Below are positions 1 through 11,694 of a stretch of 64,000 bases of DNA, in pieces. The stretch is from the NCBI GenBank assembly GCA_965603825.1, contig CBFDEM010000011.1:124001-188000 (forward strand), in the 5' to 3' direction. The position numbers and the translations under genes are program-made. The notes under the pieces are model-generated. The model did no database searches, was not told the DNA's origin, and saw only the letters and a program-made list of their open reading frames with translations. The stretch's first letter is position 1; every line of letters starts with the position of its first letter. The DNA is from Blepharisma stoltei ATCC 30299. Lineage: Eukaryota > Protista > Ciliophora.

Positions 1-2664
1 CATACCTTCTACATGTTTTCACTAGAAGCCTACTTATTAGTCGTCATGCGCGCTATTGACATTGTAGCTGAAAAATACCGAGCCCCAAGCGCTACCAAGT
101 CTAAACGTGGAAAAACTCCTGAGGTCACCGAAATCGTGAAGCCTGAAAACGTCAGCATGGAAAACCCATCAGGCCAAGCCCAAGAAGGCGAAGAAAAGAA
201 AGACGAGTCTTTCCAATCCCAAGCACCAAAAGAAGAAGAAAAGAAAGAAGAAGAGAAAAAAGAAGAGCCAGAAGCAAATGAAGCAGAAATGGAAGAAGAG
301 GAAGAAGTCCAGCAGGAATTAAGCCCAAGGTCACTGAGAAAAAGAGTGTCTGAGCTGACTGAGTCAATTACATATCAATCACATATATACGTCAGAAGAG
401 GCTTATTTGAGCAGCATAAATTATTGGTGGCGACTATGCTTTGTTTTAGGGTCATGATTAAGGATGGAAAAATTGATGAGCAGGAGTATGCATTTTTAAT
501 TAATGGAAAACCTATGGTAGATGCAGGACATCAATCAGAAAATTTGAATTGGTTTAGTGAGTATCAGTGGGGGATGATTAAAGCGCTAGATCAATTAGGC
601 CCGTTCCAAGGGCTAGCAAGCAATGTAGATAGTGATTATTTGCAGTGGAAAAAGTGGTATATGGAAGAAAAGGCAGAAATTTCAGACCTGCCGCGTAATT
701 TCAAAGAAATTTCTTATTTCCACAAACTTTTATTAATAAGAGCGCTCAGACCAGACAGAATTACTAGCGCTTTAAGCATTTTTGTTAGAGAACAATTAGG
801 TAACCACTACATCGAGCAGACTCCTTTTAATATGTTTGAAACTTATAAAGAAACCTCTAAAACGGTCCCTGTGTTCTTTGTCTTGTTCCCTGGTGCTGAT
901 CCTACCCCAGAAGTCGAAGAAGTTGCAGAAACCTTAGGGATCACTGCCCTTAACAATAAATTCAGAAATATATCTATGGGTCAAGGCCAAGAGAAAAACG
1001 CTGAGCAAGCTATGGAGCAGCTTTCACAAAATGGTGGCTGGGTCATGCTTCAAAACGTCCATCTCATGCAAAGCTGGCTCAAAGTACTCGAAAACATGCT
1101 TGAAAAATTCTCCAAAAAAGCCCACGAAAACTTCCGATGCTTCATTTCTTCAGAGCCTCCAGCGCTGCCTGATATGAAAATCATCCCTGAGACTATTTTG
1201 CAAAACTGTGTTAAGGTAGCTAATGAAGCTCCACAAGCTCTTAAAGATAACTTAAGGCGTGCTTATAGCCATTTCTCTCAAAAAGATTTAGATTCGTCTC
1301 GGAAGTCAAATGAATTTAAAGCTATGCTTTTCGCTCTTTGTATGTTCCATTCATTAGTCCTTGGAAGACGAAAATTCGGGTCTCAAGGCTGGAGTAAGCA
1401 TTATTCATTTAATGATGGTGATTTGACTATTTGTTCTGATATTTTGAACAATTATTTAGCGAAATATGATGAAGTCCCATATGCAGATTTACGATATCTG
1501 TATGGAGAAATTATGTATGGAGGCCATATCACTGATAACTGGGATAGACGTACTTGTAACACTTATTTACAAGTGTTAATCAGGCCTGAGCTGATGTCTG
1601 GCATGAACTTGGCTCCTCAATTCAAATCTCCAGACCCAGCAAGATTTGACTATGAAGCTTATTCTAAATATATTGAAGAAAAACTGCCTATAGAATCCCC
1701 ACAGATGTTCGGCATGCATCCAAACGCTGAAATTAACTATTTAACAGCTACAGGAGATAAACTATTCACCACAATCTTAGACGTGTCAGGTGTTTCTGGT
1801 GCTGGTGAAGCTGTAAAGAAAAAAGAAGACGTTGTAATAGACCTAATAAATGCATTTTTAGCTAAACTCCCACAGGAGTTCAAGATGTTTGAAATTACAG
1901 CGAAAACCAAGGAAAGGCCTCCAGATGTAGTTGTCTGTTTGCAGGAGTGTGAAAGAATGAATATTCTTTTAGGAACGATTAGAAGGTCTTTAATAGAACT
2001 TCAGATGGGGCTAAGCGGAGCCTTGAATATTACGGATAGAATGGAAGCACTGTCAAATTCTTTGTCTGTTAACAGAGTGCCTAAAGGATGGGAAGATGTC
2101 GCTTATTTCTCTAAAAAAGTGCTTGGAATTTGGTTTTTAGATATGTTGGAAAGAGTAAAACAGCTTGAAGAGTGGTCGAAAGAGCTAGTTTTGCCTAAAT
2201 CTTTGTGGATTGCAGGGCTGTTTAACCCTATGTCGTTTTTGACTTCTGTCATGCAAACTACAGCAAGATCGAAAAATCTGCCACTTGATAATATGACTTT
2301 GCAGACCACTGTGACAAATTTCTTAGAACCTGATGAAATCCACAATTACCCAGAAAATGGAGCATATGTGCATGGGTTCTTTTTAGAAGGAGCTGCATGG
2401 GAATTAGGAAGAAGCCCAACTGAAGAAGGGTACTTAACAGACTCTACATTGAAAGATCTATATCCTAAGCTGCCTGTAGTCAATGTTTTAGCGGTGCCAA
2501 TTGAAGAAAAAGCTACCTTAGGAATTTATGACTGTCCTTGCTACGTCACCTCACAGAGAGGACCAACTTATGTATTTACTGCTGGCTTGAAGATGGAAAG
2601 TGAAGAAAGCGATCCAAAGAAATGGGTACTGGCTGGTGTCGCTTTACTTATGGCTGAAGGATAA
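1..2664 (+). CDS. Axonemal dynein heavy chain, C-terminal part (AAA6, lid and C-terminal domain); 5' end lies outside the window
   Basis: Frame is open from base 1 (HTFYMFSLEAY...). Motifs RGLFEQHKLL, ISMGQGQ, WVMLQNVHL, GEIMYGGHITDNWDRR, FGMHPNAEI, CLQECERMN, YDCPCY and KWVLAGVALL. Ends in TAA. Confidence 0.97.
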   Translation, partial: HTFYMFSLEAYLLVVMRAIDIVAEKYRAPSATKSKRGKTPEVTEIVKPENVSMENPSGQAQEGEEKKDESFQSQAPKEEEKKEEEKKEEPEANEAEMEEEEEVQQELSPRSLRKRVSELTESITYQSHIYVRRGLFEQHKLLVATMLCFRVMIKDGKIDEQEYAFLINGKPMVDAGHQSENLNWFSEYQWGMIKALDQLGPFQGLASNVDSDYLQWKKWYMEEKAEISDLPRNFKEISYFHKLLLIRALRPDRITSALSIFVREQLGNHYIEQTPFNMFETYKETSKTVPVFFVLFPGADPTPEVEEVAETLGITALNNKFRNISMGQGQEKNAEQAMEQLSQNGGWVMLQNVHLMQSWLKVLENMLEKFSKKAHENFRCFISSEPPALPDMKIIPETILQNCVKVANEAPQALKDNLRRAYSHFSQKDLDSSRKSNEFKAMLFALCMFHSLVLGRRKFGSQGWSKHYSFNDGDLTICSDILNNYLAKYDEVPYADLRYLYGEIMYGGHITDNWDRRTCNTYLQVLIRPELMSGMNLAPQFKSPDPARFDYEAYSKYIEEKLPIESPQMFGMHPNAEINYLTATGDKLFTTILDVSGVSGAGEAVKKKEDVVIDLINAFLAKLPQEFKMFEITAKTKERPPDVVVCLQECERMNILLGTIRRSLIELQMGLSGALNITDRMEALSNSLSVNRVPKGWEDVAYFSKKVLGIWFLDMLERVKQLEEWSKELVLPKSLWIAGLFNPMSFLTSVMQTTARSKNLPLDNMTLQTTVTNFLEPDEIHNYPENGAYVHGFFLEGAAWELGRSPTEEGYLTDSTLKDLYPKLPVVNVLAVPIEEKATLGIYDCPCYVTSQRGPTYVFTAGLKMESEESDPKKWVLAGVALLMAEG

Positions 2665-2753
2665 CCTAATTTAATCTCATTTACTGAATAGTATCTTTCT
2701 CTATATATTATTTTGAAATAATTATAAGCATAATTTAGATTTCCAAAAATAGT

Positions 2754-3671
2754 TTAAAAATTAGCAACAGTCGCAATACTCCATTTATCTCCCAGGCCAT
2801 TAAAAATAAAAAACCTCTTTAAAAACAGCTTCCTATAGCATTTCCTTATATCATCCTCACTAATCCCAGAAGTTTTTCTCAAATCTTCAGGATACAGATT
2901 CTCTTTGCCGCTCATCCAGCTGACCATTAAAGAAATGGCGCAGGCCAGGGCCATTTCTTCTTCATTTACCATTAAATTACAGTCTTTAATTTTCTTCATT
3001 GCTTGTGCACATTTCGTAACCATTTCATTAGAAAAATCAAAATTAATAGCAAGCTTAGCGAATAAAGAAAAATCTTCTCTGTTTATTGCAGCTTCAGGAG
3101 CATGGATTTTTACAGTGTTATAGCATCTGACTATTTCATTTTTTGTAATTTTGTTAATATTTAAGATTTCTTTTAGCGGGATTTTATTTCCATATTTTCT
3201 GCACAAACAGTATATAATTGCTGATAAAATTCCTATATGAGATTTTCCTTTGGTGACTTTTTTTAAAAATAAAACCCTGAATATTTTTTTGGCTTCCTCA
3301 GAAATACTATCACTTAAACATAAAATGTGGCAAAAATCATCAATTTCACTGAAAGTCATGGAGAGAGTTTTATCTTGAGAAGAACTCATACTTCTTTGGG
3401 CTCATCTGGCAAGTCCATAATGAGTCTCATGTTTTGAAATCACTGTGCATAAGCCTTTATCTGAGAGAAGTTCATTATTAGGGGCTCCAATTCTACAAGG
3501 ATCTTGGTCTCTTGATCCATCTTCTTCTGTTAGATTTCTTCATTCAGGGCCATCATCTATAAGTTTATCAATTTGTATCCTTCCGCATTTTTTACAAACA
3601 ACTGTGCCTTCTCTTTCGTCAACCACTAAGGAATGTAAAGCTTTACATTCAATGCATTGGAAGATTGACAT
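2754..3671 (-). CDS. Transcription initiation factor TFIIB-like (Zn ribbon, B-reader, cyclin repeats), 305 aa
   Basis: With TGA=Trp the ORF extends to the ATG at 3671: MSIFQCIECKALHSLVVDEREGTVVCKKCGRIQIDKLIDDGPEW(TGA 3540-3542)RNL...DPCRIG...LARW(TGA 3402-3404)AQRS. This joins the cyclin-fold ORF 2754..3389. Confidence 0.92.
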
Positions 3672-3779
3672 TATTTAATTTTGCAATTTATTATAATTTA
3701 AGCTGGGGGCTTATAGCTATTTAATACTTGCCTAGTTATTTCTTAATGTTATTTATAATTGAAAATAATTTATTAACTA

Positions 3780-4389
3780 TTAAATCCAATCTTGATTATT
3801 TAGCATATAATCTTTAAAAGCTTCTAAAGCCCTAAATCTGTGTGAGATTGAATTTTTTAAATTTGGATCCATTTCTGCAAATGTTTGCTCATATCCTGAA
3901 GGCTGAAATATAGGATTCCATTGAAAACCATTATTGCCTCTTGGCATTACAATAGTCCCTTCGCATTTTCCATAAAATATTTGAGGCTCACCTCCAGGCT
4001 TGCAATATCCAATTCTGCATTCTGTTCATGCTTTTTTATTATCAAACCCAGCTAATAGCCTGAAAAGTCCTTCATCTTCTAATGCTTTTCAAAATCATTT
4101 TCTATATAAATTTTACATATAAGGCCCTGGGAGACCTCCTAGGGCTTCAAAGCATAAGCAAGTGTCCTCACAAATCACAGGAGCATTTATCTGGTTGCAT
4201 GCTATTTTTAGCTTATCTGAAATAATTTCATCTGGAGTTCCTTGATATTCTTTTAAATCGAGATTAAATATTTCTAAATTCACATTAGAAGCTTCTAATG
4301 GAGTTTTAAGAATTTCTTTTATTTCTCTAGCCTTCCCAGCCTAGCATAACTTTTACATTTCCTGTTATGAGATATAAAATTTTGGTCAT
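3780..4389 (-). CDS. ITPA: Inosine triphosphate pyrophosphatase (HAM1/ITPase) paralog 1, 192 aa, two tiny introns
   Basis: ITGN|AGK, LKEIQG, ICEDTCL, GLPGPYI|KW(TGA)F and SHR motifs. Introns at 4341-4356 and 4102-4116. Spliced length is 579 nt. Missing from the ORF track. Confidence 0.93.
4102..4116 (-). other. 15-nt spliceosomal intron GTAAAATTTATATAG
   Basis: Removal restores GLPGPYIKWF. Same position as the intron in paralog 2. Confidence 0.92.
4341..4356 (-). other. 16-nt spliceosomal intron GTAAAAGTTATGCTAG
   Basis: Removal restores TGNAGK. Position is conserved in paralog 2. Confidence 0.9.
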
Positions 4390-4445
4390 TAATTTTAATA
4401 ATATTTTAATAAATAATCCAAAATTTCTAAAAATTATTTTTACAA

Positions 4446-5606
4446 TTATCATCCTCCATCTAGCAGCATATCTTCCACTTCATATATTTTTGCTTGTATC
4501 CCATGCCCTAAATTAACACAAACAATCGGCAAGTACAGCGGATCACTCATAACATTAACAATTTCCCCAGTATACTCTGTTGACTCAAATCATAAATCTT
4601 GATGCCAAATCGACTGTTCAATTATATACAGCATTGGAAAATTTTCACTTAAATTTTCTCCACATATCGTGTAATGCACAAATTTCCCATCTTCATCCTT
4701 TGGATACACTTTTACACTATCATTTACAGCCAGCTTCAAAATTGTGTTTTTTCTGTTCCCTCATCGTGCTCTCCTGAAGTATTCTTCCATTTTTTTCATT
4801 AAATTGCTGATCCAGTTTTCCATTTTTATTTGCAAAATTAAAGAAATTTTTTTCCTCATCCTTGTGTTTTCGCCTAGCATAGTGGCTATCGGGCATTTAT
4901 AAATATCGCTTCAGGATAGAGATTCTGTTAAATAATTCAAATATTTGGCGTTTGTGCATTTAATAACTTCTGCATGGTATCTTAAGCTGTCTAGCTCATG
5001 CAGTTTGTCATAAATGCTTTTATATTCTTTTTGGACTTCTTCGTATTCTCCTTTTCCAGGGAAGTTACCATATTTATATTGCATAAATGCAGATTGGACT
5101 GATATTTTGTTTATGTCAGCGAGATAAAAAATGACGGCGGATCTTGCTCGGACTGGCTTAAACCAGCCGCAATTTTTGCAGTCAAGGGTGCTAATGGATT
5201 TTAGTAGGTCAGGTAAAAATTCTTGGTTATTAAGGATGATTTCGGGGATATATTTTCGTAGCCTATCTTTTTCTTCTTCGAGTTCTGTTGAAGATAAATT
5301 AGCCATTCAGAGCTGGAAATTCGATCAATGGGTTGCGATTAAGCTGATTCTGTTTCCTCATTTTATTTGGCGGTAGGAGTCGCCTTCTCATTTTTGATAT
5401 AAAGATAAAGCTCTGTCGTTTATATCTGGGGTCAGATCAAGCTTTTTATTGGAGTAGGCGAATTTGCCATTGAGTCGTAAAACAAAGCTTCTAACTTTTT
5501 GTTCATTTTTGCGAATTGCACTATATCATGAGGATTTCAGCTCAGATTCTGAGGTTCATAAGTCATCAATGCTTAGGATCAGCCCATAAGGGAGTTTAAA
5601 TGACAT
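4446..5606 (-). CDS. Orphan hypothetical protein, 386 aa, with 10 in-frame TGA(Trp) codons
   Basis: One frame of 387 codons free of TAA/TAG, from ATG 5606 (MSFKLPYGL...) through track ORF 4911..5306 to ...MLLDGGW-TAA. Confidence 0.8.
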
Positions 5607-5731: not shown

Positions 5732-6341
5732 CTAAATCCAATTTTGATTAGTTATCATAAAATTCTTGAATGCTTCTAATGATCTAAATCTGTGTGAAAT
5801 TGAATTTTTAATATGCATGTCCATCTCTGCAAACGTTTGATCATACCCAATAGGCTGGAAAATAGGATCCCATCCAAAGCCATTATCCCCTCTTGGCATT
5901 ACAATAGTCCCTTCACAGCTTCCACAAAATACCTGAGGCTCATCTCCAGGCTTACAATACCCGACTCTGCATTCAGCTCTTGCATTTTTATTATCAAATC
6001 CCACCAATAGATTAAAAAGTCCACGAGTTCCGATTGCTTCTCTGAACCATTTACTACATGAATTTTACATATAAGGGCCAGGCAATCCTCCAAGTGCTTC
6101 AAAGCACAAGCAAGTATCTTCACAAATCACTGGTGCATTTACTTGATTGCAAGCAATTTTTAGTTTTTCTGAAATAATTTCATCTGGAGTTCCTTGGATT
6201 TCTTTTAAGTCAAGAGTAAGAATTTCTAAATTCACATTAGAAGCTTCTAATGGAGCCCTGAGGATTTCTTTCATTTCTCTAACTTTGCCAGCCTATGGTA
6301 AAATTTACGTTTCCTGTGATGAGATAGAGGATTTTGCTCAT
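5732..6341 (-). CDS. ITPA: Inosine triphosphate pyrophosphatase (HAM1/ITPase) paralog 2, 192 aa, two tiny introns
   Basis: ITGN|AGK, LKEIQG, EDTCL, GLPGPYI|KWF, FGWDPIF and SHR motifs. Introns at 6293-6308 and 6054-6068 join track ORFs 6065..6274 and 5732..6007. Confidence 0.95.
6054..6068 (-). other. 15-nt intron GTAAAATTCATGTAG
   Basis: Removal restores GPYIKWF. Confidence 0.92.
6293..6308 (-). other. 16-nt intron GTAAATTTTACCATAG
   Basis: Removal restores TGNAGK. Confidence 0.9.
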
Positions 6342-6409
6342 GAAATTTATGACATTTTCAGATGATAATAGGTTACAAAAAGACTTGATTATTTAATATA
6401 TAATTATAT

Positions 6410-6973
6410 TTATAGAAATATGTTGCTTTTTCTTGCTTTTAATATATTTTGCTTCACCTGCAATTTGTGAAAATTCGGTAATCCTTTTAAGCATTTTATT
6501 GCACTAGAAAATTCTTTTTCCCAGCCGCTTTCAGTAAATTCTTCATCGAATTCATCATCTTCTTCTCTGACACATAAAATTTTTCTAGGCTGATCTAAAG
6601 TTTCCTTAGATTTCTGAATCAAATCATTTACTAAGTTTTGATTGTGCATCAAAACTTTGACATTATATTTTACATTTAGGTCGAGAGAGTCCATCTTCAG
6701 AATCTCGATGACTCTTGCATAATTTTTATGCTGTTTTATATAAACATGATTTACTTCTGGCATTTCGTTAAAAAGTTCTTTTGCTTCCTTTATGAAAGAA
6801 AAGTAGTTCATTACTTTATTTTGTTCGTCAGGCGTGTATTGATAGTCCCCAGGCAATTGATAGTGGCCTAATTTTCTATTGTAATTTGGTTCAACAATTT
6901 GTTGGGTTGTAGTCTTACCATAGCCTTTTTTGAAGTGAAGGGTCCTTACCTCAGTTTTTATAATTTTGGACAT
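6410..6973 (-). CDS. Orphan hypothetical protein, 187 aa
   Basis: Uninterrupted ATG-TAA ORF with an A-rich start context. No family recognised. Confidence 0.6.
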   Translation of the reverse strand: MSKIIKTEVRTLHFKKGYGKTTTQQIVEPNYNRKLGHYQLPGDYQYTPDEQNKVMNYFSFIKEAKELFNEMPEVNHVYIKQHKNYARVIEILKMDSLDLNVKYNVKVLMHNQNLVNDLIQKSKETLDQPRKILCVREEDDEFDEEFTESGWEKEFSSAIKCLKGLPNFHKLQVKQNILKARKSNIFL

Positions 6974-6976
6974 TTT

Positions 6977-7018
6977 TTATAAAATACCTTACAATGAAGC
7001 GTAAAGGGTATTTTATAA
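6977..7018. repeat. Imperfect inverted repeat (12-bp arms TTATAAAATACC / GGTATTTTATAA plus inner TTAC/GTAA)
   Basis: Read directly from the sequence. Abuts the ATG of 6410..6973. Confidence 0.7.
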
Positions 7019-7058
7019 TAATTTAACCCTATTTTAAAGTTATATGTTATAAACCTTG

Positions 7059-7116
7059 ATATAGAAATTGCCCGAGGATGGCGCTATTTTGCGCCATCCT
7101 CGGGCAATTTCTATAT
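7059..7116. repeat. Perfect palindrome/hairpin, 26-bp arms and 6-nt loop
   Basis: ATATAGAAATTGCCCGAGGATGGCGC-TATTTT-GCGCCATCCTCGGGCAATTTCTATAT. The arms are exact reverse complements. Confidence 0.97.
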
Positions 7117-8040
7117 TCATTTATTGGCATTTTATTTACACTAAAGAAATTCATAGATTACATTTAAGAAATTAAATTTAATACGAATGTGCCTAATAAT
7201 AATTAATCATTCTCATATCAATAGATAAAGACTATCTATTGAAAATTATTATGGAAAAACTAATATAAAACTACTTTTAAATTTTTGTCTCATTTAACTA
7301 AGTAAATTATTTAATAATAAAAATAGAACTAAATTACTAGAGCTTAGGATTAAGTTTTATATAAATAGTTCTGAATTTGCTAAGATATACTTGAAGTTTA
7401 TAGTTACTCACGCGGTTCAATTTAACAAATATCTAAGAGTAATGATAGAAAAACGCTAGATAGTTATTTCAAAGCAATCAAATTAGCTTTTTTTAGCTGA
7501 TTAAATTTAAGCATCTCCAAATATTTCATTATTATTGCTTAAGCCTTGAGTGCTAACTTGAAGTGGTGTTCTAGAATATTCCAATTCGAAACCAAAAACT
7601 TTTGATTTTTTTCAATAATTTTTGTTAGCCAGCAAAGTTGTATCTTTTATTAATTCTCGAATAGTTTCCTATTTTTTAAATCTAACATCAGTTTCTCCCT
7701 AAAATTCATTGCCTAGGAAAATATAAATCTTAGGAAAATTTCACTAAAAATACTTGATTTTGTGACTTCTAAGCCTAACATATCACTAGTTTGGTAAGAC
7801 TTCCTCTTAAATCATATGCAGCTTACAATTTATTACCATAGACCCACATCGCTGGCAACTATGGCAAAAATGGTGCGAAATGATTTTGCTTCTTGAAAAA
7901 AAAATTCCGACCTGCTAGTTTTTTACGCTACTTTTTTTTTCTTGAAATCTATCACATCTCATGTTTTTTACTGCAATTATCTCTTTGAATATCCCTTTTC
8001 ATATTCAAAAAATACCTTTATTTAGCTAAAATTTATTAAC

Positions 8041-8580
8041 TTATAAGCAAGACTTAAGGTGTATGAAATATTGATATTTGTTGTATATAACTTTCATACA
8101 ACGCTCGCATGTTACCTTGCGCATATTGTCATGGACCTGGTTTGAGTGAAACTTCAATGCATATTTGCTGACAAATTTTCTATCGCATTTGAGGCACTTG
8201 AAATTTCTTCTTTTTGTTCTATGTATTTTTCCTTGGTGCTGTTTGTATCCTTTATATGTGTCGAAAGTTCTGTTGCAGGGTTTGCAAAAGTACTGGGGTA
8301 TAGATATGTCTAGATTGTTCTCTAGAGGGATCATATCTGCTGAAGTTGATATATTTGTTGTGAAAAAATCATTATCATTTGAGTCTTGATTTTGATATAT
8401 TTGTTGTGACTGAATTTCAATAGATAGATTTGAGTGAAGTATTTTTTCTTCTGAGCTTCGAAAATTCAGACCGCAATGCTCACATGTGTTTGCTAGAGCT
8501 ATATTACTGGATAAATCATCAGATATATTGATCATAATTGGGGATGGTAGGTTTATTTTTGTGTCTAAGTTCAGGAACAT
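8041..8580 (-). CDS. C2H2 zinc-finger protein, paralog A, 179 aa
   Basis: CKPC..HQGKIH, CLKC..HSNQVH and CERC..HLKSC fingers, plus a degenerate N-terminal finger. Confidence 0.88.
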   Translation of the reverse strand: MFLNLDTKINLPSPIMINISDDLSSNIALANTCEHCGLNFRSSEEKILHSNLSIEIQSQQIYQNQDSNDNDFFTTNISTSADMIPLENNLDISIPQYFCKPCNRTFDTYKGYKQHQGKIHRTKRRNFKCLKCDRKFVSKYALKFHSNQVHDNMRKVTCERCMKVIYNKYQYFIHLKSCL

Positions 8581-9087
8581 TTATTTTTCTAATTACTGTC
8601 TACTTAAATATGTCAATATGATTGCGAATATGCAATTTATGCGATAACAGAATTAAGTTTATATTTCTGATAATCGAAAAATATGGCTCCTAAACTCAGA
8701 AAAGTTACACTTCAGAAATTATTATAAAAATAAAAAATTAGATTACAATTTGAAGCAAAAATGGAATACAGGACTTCTCATGCTAAATTATCTAATTTTA
8801 TAATTGAGTTATTCATTTTTAATCCTATATTAAATTAATTTATCAATTTGAAACACTTTTTCGAACTACAACAAATTAATCATTGCTATATTTTTGCAAT
8901 ATTTAATATAAATAAATAATTTATATTTTAAATTTCGTATTTGCACATAAAAATTAATCTCCAAAATGCTTTTTTCTTATAATATTTTTATAAAGGAATA
9001 TTAATTTAATCATCTGAATAGACTATGGCAATTATCATGCATTTATTTTAAATTGCCTCTTTATTTATCTTTATTAGCGCAGAAAAG

Positions 9088-9588
9088 TTATTCTTTATCA
9101 AATTCTATATAGCTTGGCAATTCTTCATGAACTGATTCAATTTGCTGCTTTAAAAAGACTTTTGGCCTCACACAATCTCTCTTTTTCAGTATGAAATCTA
9201 ATGCCTCTCTATAATTCCAACCTTTTGCAGCCATGTAATACGCAATTACAATAGACACACTCCGATTCCTTCCAAATTTACAATGGACAAGCACCTTTTC
9301 TCCTTTTGATACAACTTTATGGATAAACCTCAAAGATTCCTGCATTGCAGGCAAAATTGAATAATTTTTGCCTCTAGGGACTATAGTTGTACAATATGTA
9401 AAAGCCGCTCGAAATTCCGTTGGAGTCGGGACGGCAAAAAGCTCCACTATATGAGTGATCCTATGTTGCTTGAGGGTTTGGTAATCCTCGGCGCTTGTAT
9501 AATCCCCAATACAGATATGTTCGTCGATTTCATGCATACTTGGGAATCCAGTGACTGATTTCAGAGGATCAGAATGATGCAATTGCAT
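9088..9588 (-). CDS. Dual-specificity protein phosphatase (atypical DUSP)
   Basis: P-loop VLVHCKFGRNRS (CX5R), ITHIV, AYYM and KRDCVRP motifs. Confidence 0.9.
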   Translation of the reverse strand: MQLHHSDPLKSVTGFPSMHEIDEHICIGDYTSAEDYQTLKQHRITHIVELFAVPTPTEFRAAFTYCTTIVPRGKNYSILPAMQESLRFIHKVVSKGEKVLVHCKFGRNRSVSIVIAYYMAAKGWNYREALDFILKKRDCVRPKVFLKQQIESVHEELPSYIEFDKE

Positions 9589-9739
9589 ATTTACATAGGA
9601 TTTGATATTGAATTATTTAATCGAGACAGACATCTTGCTTGATGAAATTAATGGATTAGAGCGCCAGAAGAATAAATAGAATTTATACCAGAAAAGATAA
9701 TTTTTTTTTGGTATTTGAAATCCTTCGTCGTGATAAATT

Positions 9740-9756
9740 ATAAATGGCGAAGATAA
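9740..9756 (+). repeat. Target-site duplication, left copy ATAAATGGCGAAGATAA
   Basis: Identical to 10268-10284. The exact boundary with the tail is ambiguous by a few nt. Confidence 0.85.
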
Positions 9757-10267
9757 TAATAATAATTTTACGTTTTATCACGCCCAAGGCGTCTTAATTT
9801 TTTGCTTTTCGTAATTATCTTGATAAATTCCTTAGCATGAGCATCAATTTCGTCAACCTGACTTCTTGTCAATTCCAGCTTGTTCTTTTTTTCTTCATAT
9901 CTTCAAGAATCCAGCACAACATCCATCAAATTCAAATCTTCATCAATATCTATGTATGTCTTCAAATTCATTAGTAATTTCGTTCTTTCGTTATTAAACC
10001 TTGGACAATCTTCTATTAAATGTTTTTCATCCTGTATTTGTCAGTCGCAATGTTCACATATCGTATTTTTCGTCTGATGCCTTATAAATTGGCACAAGTT
10101 CGTGCAGTTAAAACCTGCTCTTAACCTGAAAAGTTCCCTTGCGCCGTTCACATCTTTAGGATTTAGCTTTGTGTATTCAGCCATTTTTCAGGTAACAGCA
10201 TTCATATCGCAAAATAGTGTCGTGGTTTTTCAGGTTTCTTCTCGCATCCTTTGAATGCACCATTCCC
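9757..10267 (-). mobile_element. 5'-truncated non-LTR (LINE-like) retrotransposon insertion
   Basis: Open frame 9768-10268 (TGA=Trp) encodes RELFRLRAG...ICEHCDWQIQDEKHLIEDCPRFNNER, a CX2CX7HX4C knuckle typical of the LINE ORF2 C-terminus. An (ATT)n tail follows the stop. The insert is flanked by a 17-bp direct repeat. Confidence 0.85.
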
Positions 10268-10284
10268 ATAAATGGCGAAGATAA
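10268..10284 (+). repeat. Target-site duplication, right copy ATAAATGGCGAAGATAA
   Basis: Identical to 9740-9756. Confidence 0.85.
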
Positions 10285-11130
10285 GTGCTTATAACATTAT
10301 TTGAATTATGACAATGGTAAAAAGCTATAATGGAGACTTGGACTGGAATTTTAAAAATTTAAAAATTAGACCGAAATTTGATAGCTTTGGGAAATTAATA
10401 TGAAATTAAAAATTTCAATAATTTTTAATTTAAATTGTTATATTAAAAATATAAAAAGAAAAAGATCACTTAAAACAATGAAATATATAAGAGAAAATAG
10501 GATTAGAAAACATGAAAAATTAAATGCAAAATTATTGTTTTCTTAAATTCTAATCAAAAGAGAGATAAAAATTAAAAAGTTAAATTTGGAATTAAATATC
10601 TAAAAATGGAACAGGTGACTGAATAAGAGGATGAAAAAAAAAGAAGCTACCTTACCTGCATCATAATTACTTGACTAAATCTAAAAAGAATTTTGAAATT
10701 CAAATACTAGTCCAATAAATATTTGAATCACAATGAGAAATAAAAAACAAGTGATTTTTTTTAAATTTGCCTTAAAAATTCGGACGACATAATTTCGAAG
10801 AAACCTAAAATAAATAAAGGGTTTAATTCTAGAAGCCATCACTCATATCTCCCTTTATCAAAGATATAATTTTTTTTTATTCCAACTAAATTTCAAGAAA
10901 TGATGAAGAAGTAAGAAATAAAATTTCGGAATAAGTGAGCAATATATTTAATTCTAGCCAAAGCAATAATTTTCGTATTTATAGTTATTTTTTATAATCC
11001 TTTTTTAGTTAACCCTGTTAACTCAATGTTAAGAAAATGGCCACTCGTAATTGATGACAGTGACACCAAAAAATTATTTTAACTAATAAAGAACATAAAT
11101 TAAAAAATAAATATATAAAAATAAATTATC

Positions 11131-11694
11131 TTAGTGATCTTTTTCGAGGTGAGCTTTTAAGTGATATTTATTATAAAGGAACTTACCACATTTCTCGCAG
11201 GCAACTTGGGTCGATTTTTCATGCACTTGCATAAGATGCATTTTAAGTGCATACTTATTTTTAAATCTTTTCAAGCACGCTTCACATTTTGATGCTCGTC
11301 TTCCAACGCGGTGAATTTTTCCTTGATGTTGCTTAAATCCTTTATAAGTTGAAAATCACTTGTTACAGGCTGAACAGAAGTTAGCCTTACTTTCTTTTAT
11401 AGTTTCTGTGGAAATTTGACCAGAAATTTCTACTTGAAGGTTGCTAACATTAGAAATTGTTTCTTCGGTTTGCCAAAATGCTGATCCTGATAGTGAGACC
11501 GCATTTTCATCACGAGCGCATTCCAATGAGTCTAATGAAAACTTTTCATGAAGTATCATATCGACGAATTTTATGAAATTCATACCGCAAAGCTGGCATG
11601 AATAAGTTGGATTTACTTGCAGGTTGCTTGAATGAACTAATTCCAATACAATTGGTGATGGTAGTTTTTTTTGGGTAACTCTCGACGCTTCCAT
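11131..11694 (-). CDS. C2H2 zinc-finger protein, paralog B, 187 aa
   Basis: Track ORF 11356..11694 reads through TGA: CSACNKW-FSTYKGFKQHQGKIH..CEAC..HLMQVH..CEKC..HLEKDH-TAA. Clearly similar to 8041..8580. Confidence 0.9.

Follow-up and report, generated by a model that had tools for sequence, protein, structure and literature searches.

The window analysed here, a 64-kb stretch of DNA, belongs to contig 11 of the macronuclear (MAC) assembly of the ciliate Blepharisma stoltei ATCC 30299. This MAC genome has been described as 41 Mb in 64 telomere-to-telomere contigs, with UGA read as tryptophan (PMC9942806). The spacer of interest, with a dual-specificity phosphatase gene on one side and a C2H2 zinc-finger gene on the other, contains a short element in the same orientation as the phosphatase, 168 bp upstream of its start codon. 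The features of the locus are collected in Table 1.

Table 1. Genes and element parts at the insertion locus (positions within the window; copies elsewhere are named after their contig, as C11 for contig 11)
Feature	Position	Strand	Remarks
C2H2 zinc-finger gene, paralogue	8044-8580	-	N-terminus similar to that of the gene at 11134-11694; the pair flanks phosphatase and insertion
Dual-specificity phosphatase gene	9091-9588	-	DSPc, 80.2 bits
Target-site duplication (TSD), copy adjoining the element's 3' tail	9740-9756		Exact 17-mer, twice in the window; one copy retained in the contig of run X12
(ATT)n microsatellite tail, 11 nt	9757-9767	-	Directly 3' of the stop; practically no 3' UTR
TAA stop of the ORF2 remnant	9768-9770	-	From the reading of the frame
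5'-truncated LINE ORF2 C-terminal remnant, 165 codons	9771-10267	-	99% identity to the C46 and C36-IES copies, whose frame reaches RVT_1 upstream
5-bp stem with 3-nt loop, 10 nt ahead of the stop codon	9780-9792	-	Candidate 3'-end recognition hairpin
C-x2-C-x8-H-x4-C zinc-knuckle-like motif	10005-10058	-	C46 has the same motif 3' of its RT; in the C4 relative it has partly decayed
LFRLRAG motif	10113-10133	-	Precedes the zinc-knuckle-like motif in the ORF2 remnant
TSD copy at the element's truncated 5' end	10268-10284		Exact 17-mer; compared with the contig of run X12
C2H2 zinc-finger gene	11134-11694	-	Flanks the spacer with the element

The element consists of 511 bp bracketed by a perfect direct repeat of 17 bp. 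As a preliminary description made from the letters of the window had claimed, the 17-mer occurs there exactly twice; about 0.03 chance matches are expected, and two copies were seen in 0 of 100 shuffles. The repeat cannot be extended on either flank. Apart from it, the two ends of the element are not paired by any repeat, inverted or direct, and LTRs and TIRs are absent. The boundary between tail and TSD is ambiguous by 4 nt, as the TSD begins with TTAT, which continues the repeat of the tail.

Between the two TSD copies the minus strand, read from 10267 to 9768, is a single frame without TAA or TAG and with four TGA codons (9903-9905, 10041-10043, 10188-10190 and 10230-10232). The preliminary description gave the length of this frame as 167 codons; inside the element it comprises 165 sense codons and a stop. 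Its reading of a stop followed almost at once by an (ATT)n tail was accurate. The spacing of seven residues that it gave for the cysteine-histidine motif becomes eight once the TGA within it is counted as a residue. Where the element is truncated there is no start codon: the frame enters from the flanking DNA, and its first ATG is internal. A Pfam search with the three stop-free pieces of the window copy (42-47 aa) gave no match, this being a C-terminal region without any model that survives such cutting. The antisense strand is open as well, over 172 codons without TAA or TAG under the UGA = Trp code (9766-10281, plus strand). The translation of this second frame is of low complexity, and it is probably a by-product of codon use on the sense strand. 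Long open stretches are also common in a window as gene-dense as this one (49 of at least 165 codons, compared with 0.86 in shuffles). The meaning of the frame therefore rests on homology and not on its length.

Homologous copies were sought in the whole MAC assembly (41.46 Mb, 64 contigs). A search with the 511 bp led to seven places, and an exact search with the 3' hairpin added an eighth. These eight copies have a common 3' end and staggered 5' starts, with lengths of about 50, 69, 109, 146, 469, 511, 877 and 1,700 bp. Five of them are flanked by TSDs of their own that differ from one another: 17 bp in the window copy (C11), 13 in C33, 14 in C55, 11-14 in C25 and 15-17 in C58. The copies on C46, C15 and C18 have no recognisable TSD at either end. 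Tails that come after the shared final conserved bases are either (ATT)n of varied length (C46, C58 and the excised copy at C36 described below) or A-rich (C33, C25). The 877-bp C55 copy (187279-188155) shows 89-90% identity; the final conserved bases ahead of the tail are missing from it, and its short 3' end is a different one. Common 3' ends, graded 5' truncation and individual TSDs bear out the earlier reading of the window copy as a 5'-truncated product of target-primed reverse transcription (TPRT).

The link to a reverse transcriptase (RT), for which homologs had been proposed as a check, is provided by the C46 copy and by the one at C36. Over the 511 bp of the window copy C46 is 99% identical, and its frame of 597 codons contains an RVT_1 domain and continues unbroken into the sequence shared with the window copy. 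This domain scores 71.5 bits in Pfam (cut-off 29.6), lies in the same frame as the window-copy sequence and carries the RT motifs FLDLRKAFDSV, GVRQGG and YADD, upstream of a thumb region and of the C-terminal part homologous to the window copy. The frame of the C36 copy likewise carries RVT_1 upstream. Among solved structures, human L1 ORF2p is the best match of the family RT (E = 7.9e-9). Membership of the window copy in an RT-encoding family thus rests on its sister copies, compared with which it is truncated downstream of the RT. An apparent 5' extension of the C46 ORF was rejected, since the stretch beyond the start of the element is flank, as the C36 copy shows.

A more distant relative is found on C4. 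It is a near-full-length element (approximately 1131-5356 within C4:475500-484500) that has decayed through frameshifts and stops and retains 67% nucleotide identity. Its ORF1 has a gag-type C-x2-C-x4-H-x4-C knuckle. A region 1.2 kb upstream of the RT matches the APE domain PF14529 with 42.6 bits, and the C-terminal tail, LFRLRAG...C-x2-C...H, is that of the young copies. The preliminary description held that a CCHC knuckle of this type closes ORF2 of non-LTR retrotransposons, and the predicted ORF2 of this family does end in one, 3' of the RT in C46 and in the C4 relative too. The description had also suggested looking for a full-length APE/RT master. The diverged C4 relative, with ORF1, APE and RT, answers to this in part; searches of the somatic assembly turned up neither a full-length source copy of young age nor any APE of more than 70% identity, and no somatic copy of the young subfamily reaches as far 5' as the APE.

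The in-frame TGA codons can be judged from the same comparison. At 5 of the 12 tryptophan positions of the C46 frame, the C4 relative uses the other codon (four TGA to TGG, one TGG to TGA), and two of the four TGA codons in the window copy are TGG in that relative. Such exchanges at homologous sites mark the TGA codons as sense codons and indicate that the family evolved in a host with UGA = Trp, as had been supposed.

The small stem just ahead of the stop codon is present, as noted in the preliminary description; it folds, and is not exceptional as a fold (z = -0.82). Taking all eight copies together, 39 of the 40 stem cells are paired, with four versions of the loop and one pair changed on both sides; 55 of 500 shuffles perform equally well. 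A loose pattern search for the hairpin gave noise at control level beyond the seven exact matches and C15. With a 3' UTR of practically zero length, any recognition signal would have to sit in the coding end. The stem, whose covariation and thermodynamic support is weak, is a candidate 3'-end recognition hairpin for the RT.

To compare the locus with other sequence data, contigs of four public runs (X1, X7, X8 and X12) were set against window positions 8500-11500; in such assembled contigs minor alleles are invisible, and MIC and MAC DNA are not separable. In X12, which carries the same species label and comes from the same study as the run that best represents the window, one contig of 3,671 nt and depth 142.8 spans 8500-9739 and passes from there directly to 10268-11498. 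It skips 9740-10267 (528 bp), with 17 letters that fit on either side. Exactly one copy of the TSD is therefore kept, and the site is empty, as the preliminary description had suggested a site in another strain might be. The flanks of this contig differ from the window at 79 of 2,471 positions (3.2%) and by indels, and so represent another genotype. Given this divergence and the shared species label, X12 presumably derives from a strain other than ATCC 30299. The strains sequenced in the project were ATCC 30299 (Germany) and HT-IV (Japan) (PMC9942806), and X12 would fit HT-IV.

In X1 and X7, which come from two studies, contigs at flank depth enter the element from both sides by 26-30 nt, a reach just under the 31-letter threshold for bridging, and there is no joint that skips it; the filled site also rests on the long-read assembly. 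In X12 no contig crosses a filled junction, and the interior of the element has a depth of 1-4 compared with 143 for the flanks. The young subfamily thus seems nearly absent from the soma of that strain, and the whole LINE burst looks specific to the ATCC-like lineage. Two further observations concern X12: the flank indels include an 11-nt insertion after 10355, and a 39-nt fragment of the 3' end (9765-9803) occurs at depth 80, at another locus.

The age of the insertion can be estimated from the young copies. The window copy, C46, C33 and the C36 copy differ pairwise by 0.8-1.9%, in a star-like pattern with no shared splits, and have 2, 3, 2 and 6 private changes, respectively. An insertion older than the strain split should have led to at least 7.45 private changes in the 466 bp compared, and the window copy has 2 (Poisson P = 0.021). 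The insertion is accordingly placed after the split, in keeping with the youth ascribed to it earlier. The undamaged frame had been offered as another sign of youth. It does reflect youth, and not selection, because 4 of the 5 differences from C46 are non-synonymous; the openness of the frame says little by itself.

The fate of one sister copy is different. In the B. stoltei assembly GCA_914767885.1, a protein with 99% identity to the C46 RT is placed on CAJZBQ010000036.1, where a LINE copy of 1.79 kb is 99.2% identical to C46. Its flanks (the IES occupies 5908-7702 in the working piece of this locus) are 100% identical to MAC contig 36, and the MAC contig is without the 1,795 bp at the junction C36:463612-463614. 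The limits of the missing segment are exactly the truncated 5' end of the LINE and the end of its tail of about 19 ATT units. TAA bounds the segment on both sides, one TAA is left in the MAC, and any TSD is at most 3 bp long. The C36 copy is an IES of very recent origin that arose from a LINE insertion. Absence from the mature MAC, by which an IES is recognised, applies to it and does not apply to the window copy, which is present in the MAC assembly. The same burst thus gave one copy that is precisely eliminated and several, C11 among them, that are retained. A second IES, of 124 bp, lies about 1 kb downstream of the C36 LINE IES (8711-8834 in the working piece).

Taken together, the window copy very probably represents an APE-type non-LTR (LINE) element, 5'-truncated and dead on arrival, with 511 bp of ORF2 C-terminus and tail, inserted recently in a lineage like that of ATCC 30299. 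It contains neither RT nor APE and has no own start, so that it is incapable of moving or of giving rise to a useful protein. The insertion would have begun with a nick by the element's endonuclease in an AT-rich intergenic target upstream of the phosphatase gene. The freed 3' end, terminating in the complement of TTAT, would then have annealed to the (AUU)n end of the element RNA. In TPRT, letters shared by tail and target are expected when the nicked target strand anneals to the RNA tail. Reverse transcription may have started at this point and stopped, or been cut short, after about 0.5 kb, and a second-strand nick 17 bp away would account for the duplication. The insertion is one of a small and recent burst, star-like in its pattern, which comprises at least four copies with 98-99% identity, and it came after separation from the X12 strain. 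It most likely took place in the germline and was then not removed during macronuclear development.

The strongest competitor to a germline insertion is somatic retrotransposition, which is unlikely though by no means negligible. The element would have entered the polyploid macronucleus of a clonal line directly and come near to fixation by amitotic assortment; it would be missing from the MIC and disappear with the next sexual generation. Clonal culture of the strain has lasted more than 50 years, and selfing is rare (PMC9942806). Scanning should also remove a new germline insertion that the parental MAC lacks, as happens to the C36 sister; the window copy is nonetheless found in the MAC at the depth of its flanks. 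However, a highly polyploid nucleus makes fixation a demanding process, the published expression of RT genes is negligible, and the germline was demonstrably reached by the same burst, the C36 copy being an IES.

Considerably less probable is an old insertion with differential excision, present in both germlines, removed as an IES in the MAC of X12 by a cut within the TA-containing TSD, and retained in the MAC of ATCC 30299. Blepharisma does excise TA-bound IESs precisely, the C36 sister is cut exactly at its insertion boundaries, and the window TSD contains TA dinucleotides. Precise excision in X12 would also leave a single TSD copy, and contigs cannot show a rare MIC allele. Against this stand the few private substitutions, which are out of proportion to the divergence of the flanks, as well as the want of a filled-junction contig in X12 and the low depth of the young-subfamily interior there.

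A host gene or domesticated remnant encoding a small CCHC protein, with a coincidental repeat, was rejected as scarcely credible: the frame is intact under the host code and lies just upstream of, and in the same orientation as, a probably expressed phosphatase gene (depth 1207 in run X8, only guessed to be RNA), but it has no start codon at the truncation point, most of its differences from C46 are non-synonymous, the locus is absent from another strain, copies of differing length occur elsewhere in the genome, and the low-depth, RNA-like X8 contigs over the element have loose ends matching the C33, C46 or C55 copies and not the window locus. An assembly artefact was considered and likewise rejected.

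Several known systems invite comparison. L1 elements are frequently truncated at the 5' end, with TSDs of roughly 7-20 bp and priming aided by complementarity between tail and target. Besides the match of its RT, the Blepharisma family resembles human and other mammalian L1 in the plan of ORF1 and ORF2 (APE, RT and a Cys-rich tail) seen in the C4 relative. It differs in that the tail is (ATT)n or short and A-rich, with no long poly(A), and in having almost no 3' UTR. The knuckle is C-x2-C-x8-H-x4-C, and the ORF uses UGA = Trp. A second point of reference is the 'stringent-type' LINEs, such as the Drosophila I factor with its (TAA)n, CR1, UnaL2 of the eel and ZfL2 of the zebrafish, which combine microsatellite tails with a 3' hairpin. 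Like them, the Blepharisma family has a tail of simple repeats that varies in length, and near its 3' end a conserved small hairpin as a candidate RT recognition site. In contrast to these elements, its hairpin lies inside the coding sequence and covaries weakly, and some copies are A-rich-tailed.

Among ciliates, the REP elements of Tetrahymena are also APE-type non-LTR retrotransposons; they are described as confined to the germline micronucleus in the account that cites them (Fillingham et al. 2004, cited in PMC9942856), whereas the window copy and several of its sisters are retained in the somatic genome. The preliminary description had treated somatic location as a surprise; in B. stoltei it had been published before. 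Singh et al. 2023 reported more than 30 APE-type non-LTR genes in the MAC (PMC9942806). Seah et al. 2023 defined three non-LTR families with RepeatModeler (rnd-1_family-273, rnd-1_family-276 as well as rnd-4_family-193), with LINE copies more than 97% identical that were read as a recent radiation, negligible expression and partial excision at some LINE loci (PMC9942856). The present family agrees with these in coming from the same genome and in comprising APE and RVT_1 LINEs in somatic DNA, with copies of high identity, some of them on IESs.

For rnd-4_family-193, 79 copies have been listed with a median of 279 bp, 36 of the 79 on IESs, and one copy of 4.6 kb followed in length by one of about 2 kb (PMC9942856). 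Copy number, length profile and IES share are compatible with the family described here, the comparison being one of profiles and not of consensus sequences. The C4 relative may correspond to the one copy of 4.6 kb. The genome contains two further LINE RT families in multiple copies, with identical scores and open frames of 322 aa, which are probably the published rnd-1_family-276 and -273. Members of these two occur at C46:372001, C40:709627, C37:131592, C39:573535, C59:5913, C15:652200 and C57:59167, and at C11:1337-2095, C45:170194 and C51:679672. Several of these are only a few kb away from the end of a contig, and one such end is the start of the window's own contig.

LINE copies in the somatic genome of B. 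stoltei have thus been known since 2023, and the window copy is a well-documented instance. Text searches of Seah et al. 2023 and its SI (PMC9942856) found no analysis of LINE TSDs, 5' truncation, tails or empty sites. New here are the anatomy of TPRT, the polymorphism between strains, the evidence from codons and a sister of the same age that is precisely excised as an IES.

The TSD, the tail, the truncation series and the empty site are direct evidence of TPRT, and place retrotransposition in the lineage of one strain after the split from the other. The burst also provides a matched set of insertions of the same age and 99% identity. The C36 copy became a precisely excised IES within less than 1% divergence, and C11, C46 and C33 were retained. 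From such a set it would emerge what determines if a newly made insertion is singled out for elimination. The pair of retained and excised copies would let crosses of the two mating-type strains address a long-standing question, how a ciliate marks an insertion as 'foreign' and how IESs arise.
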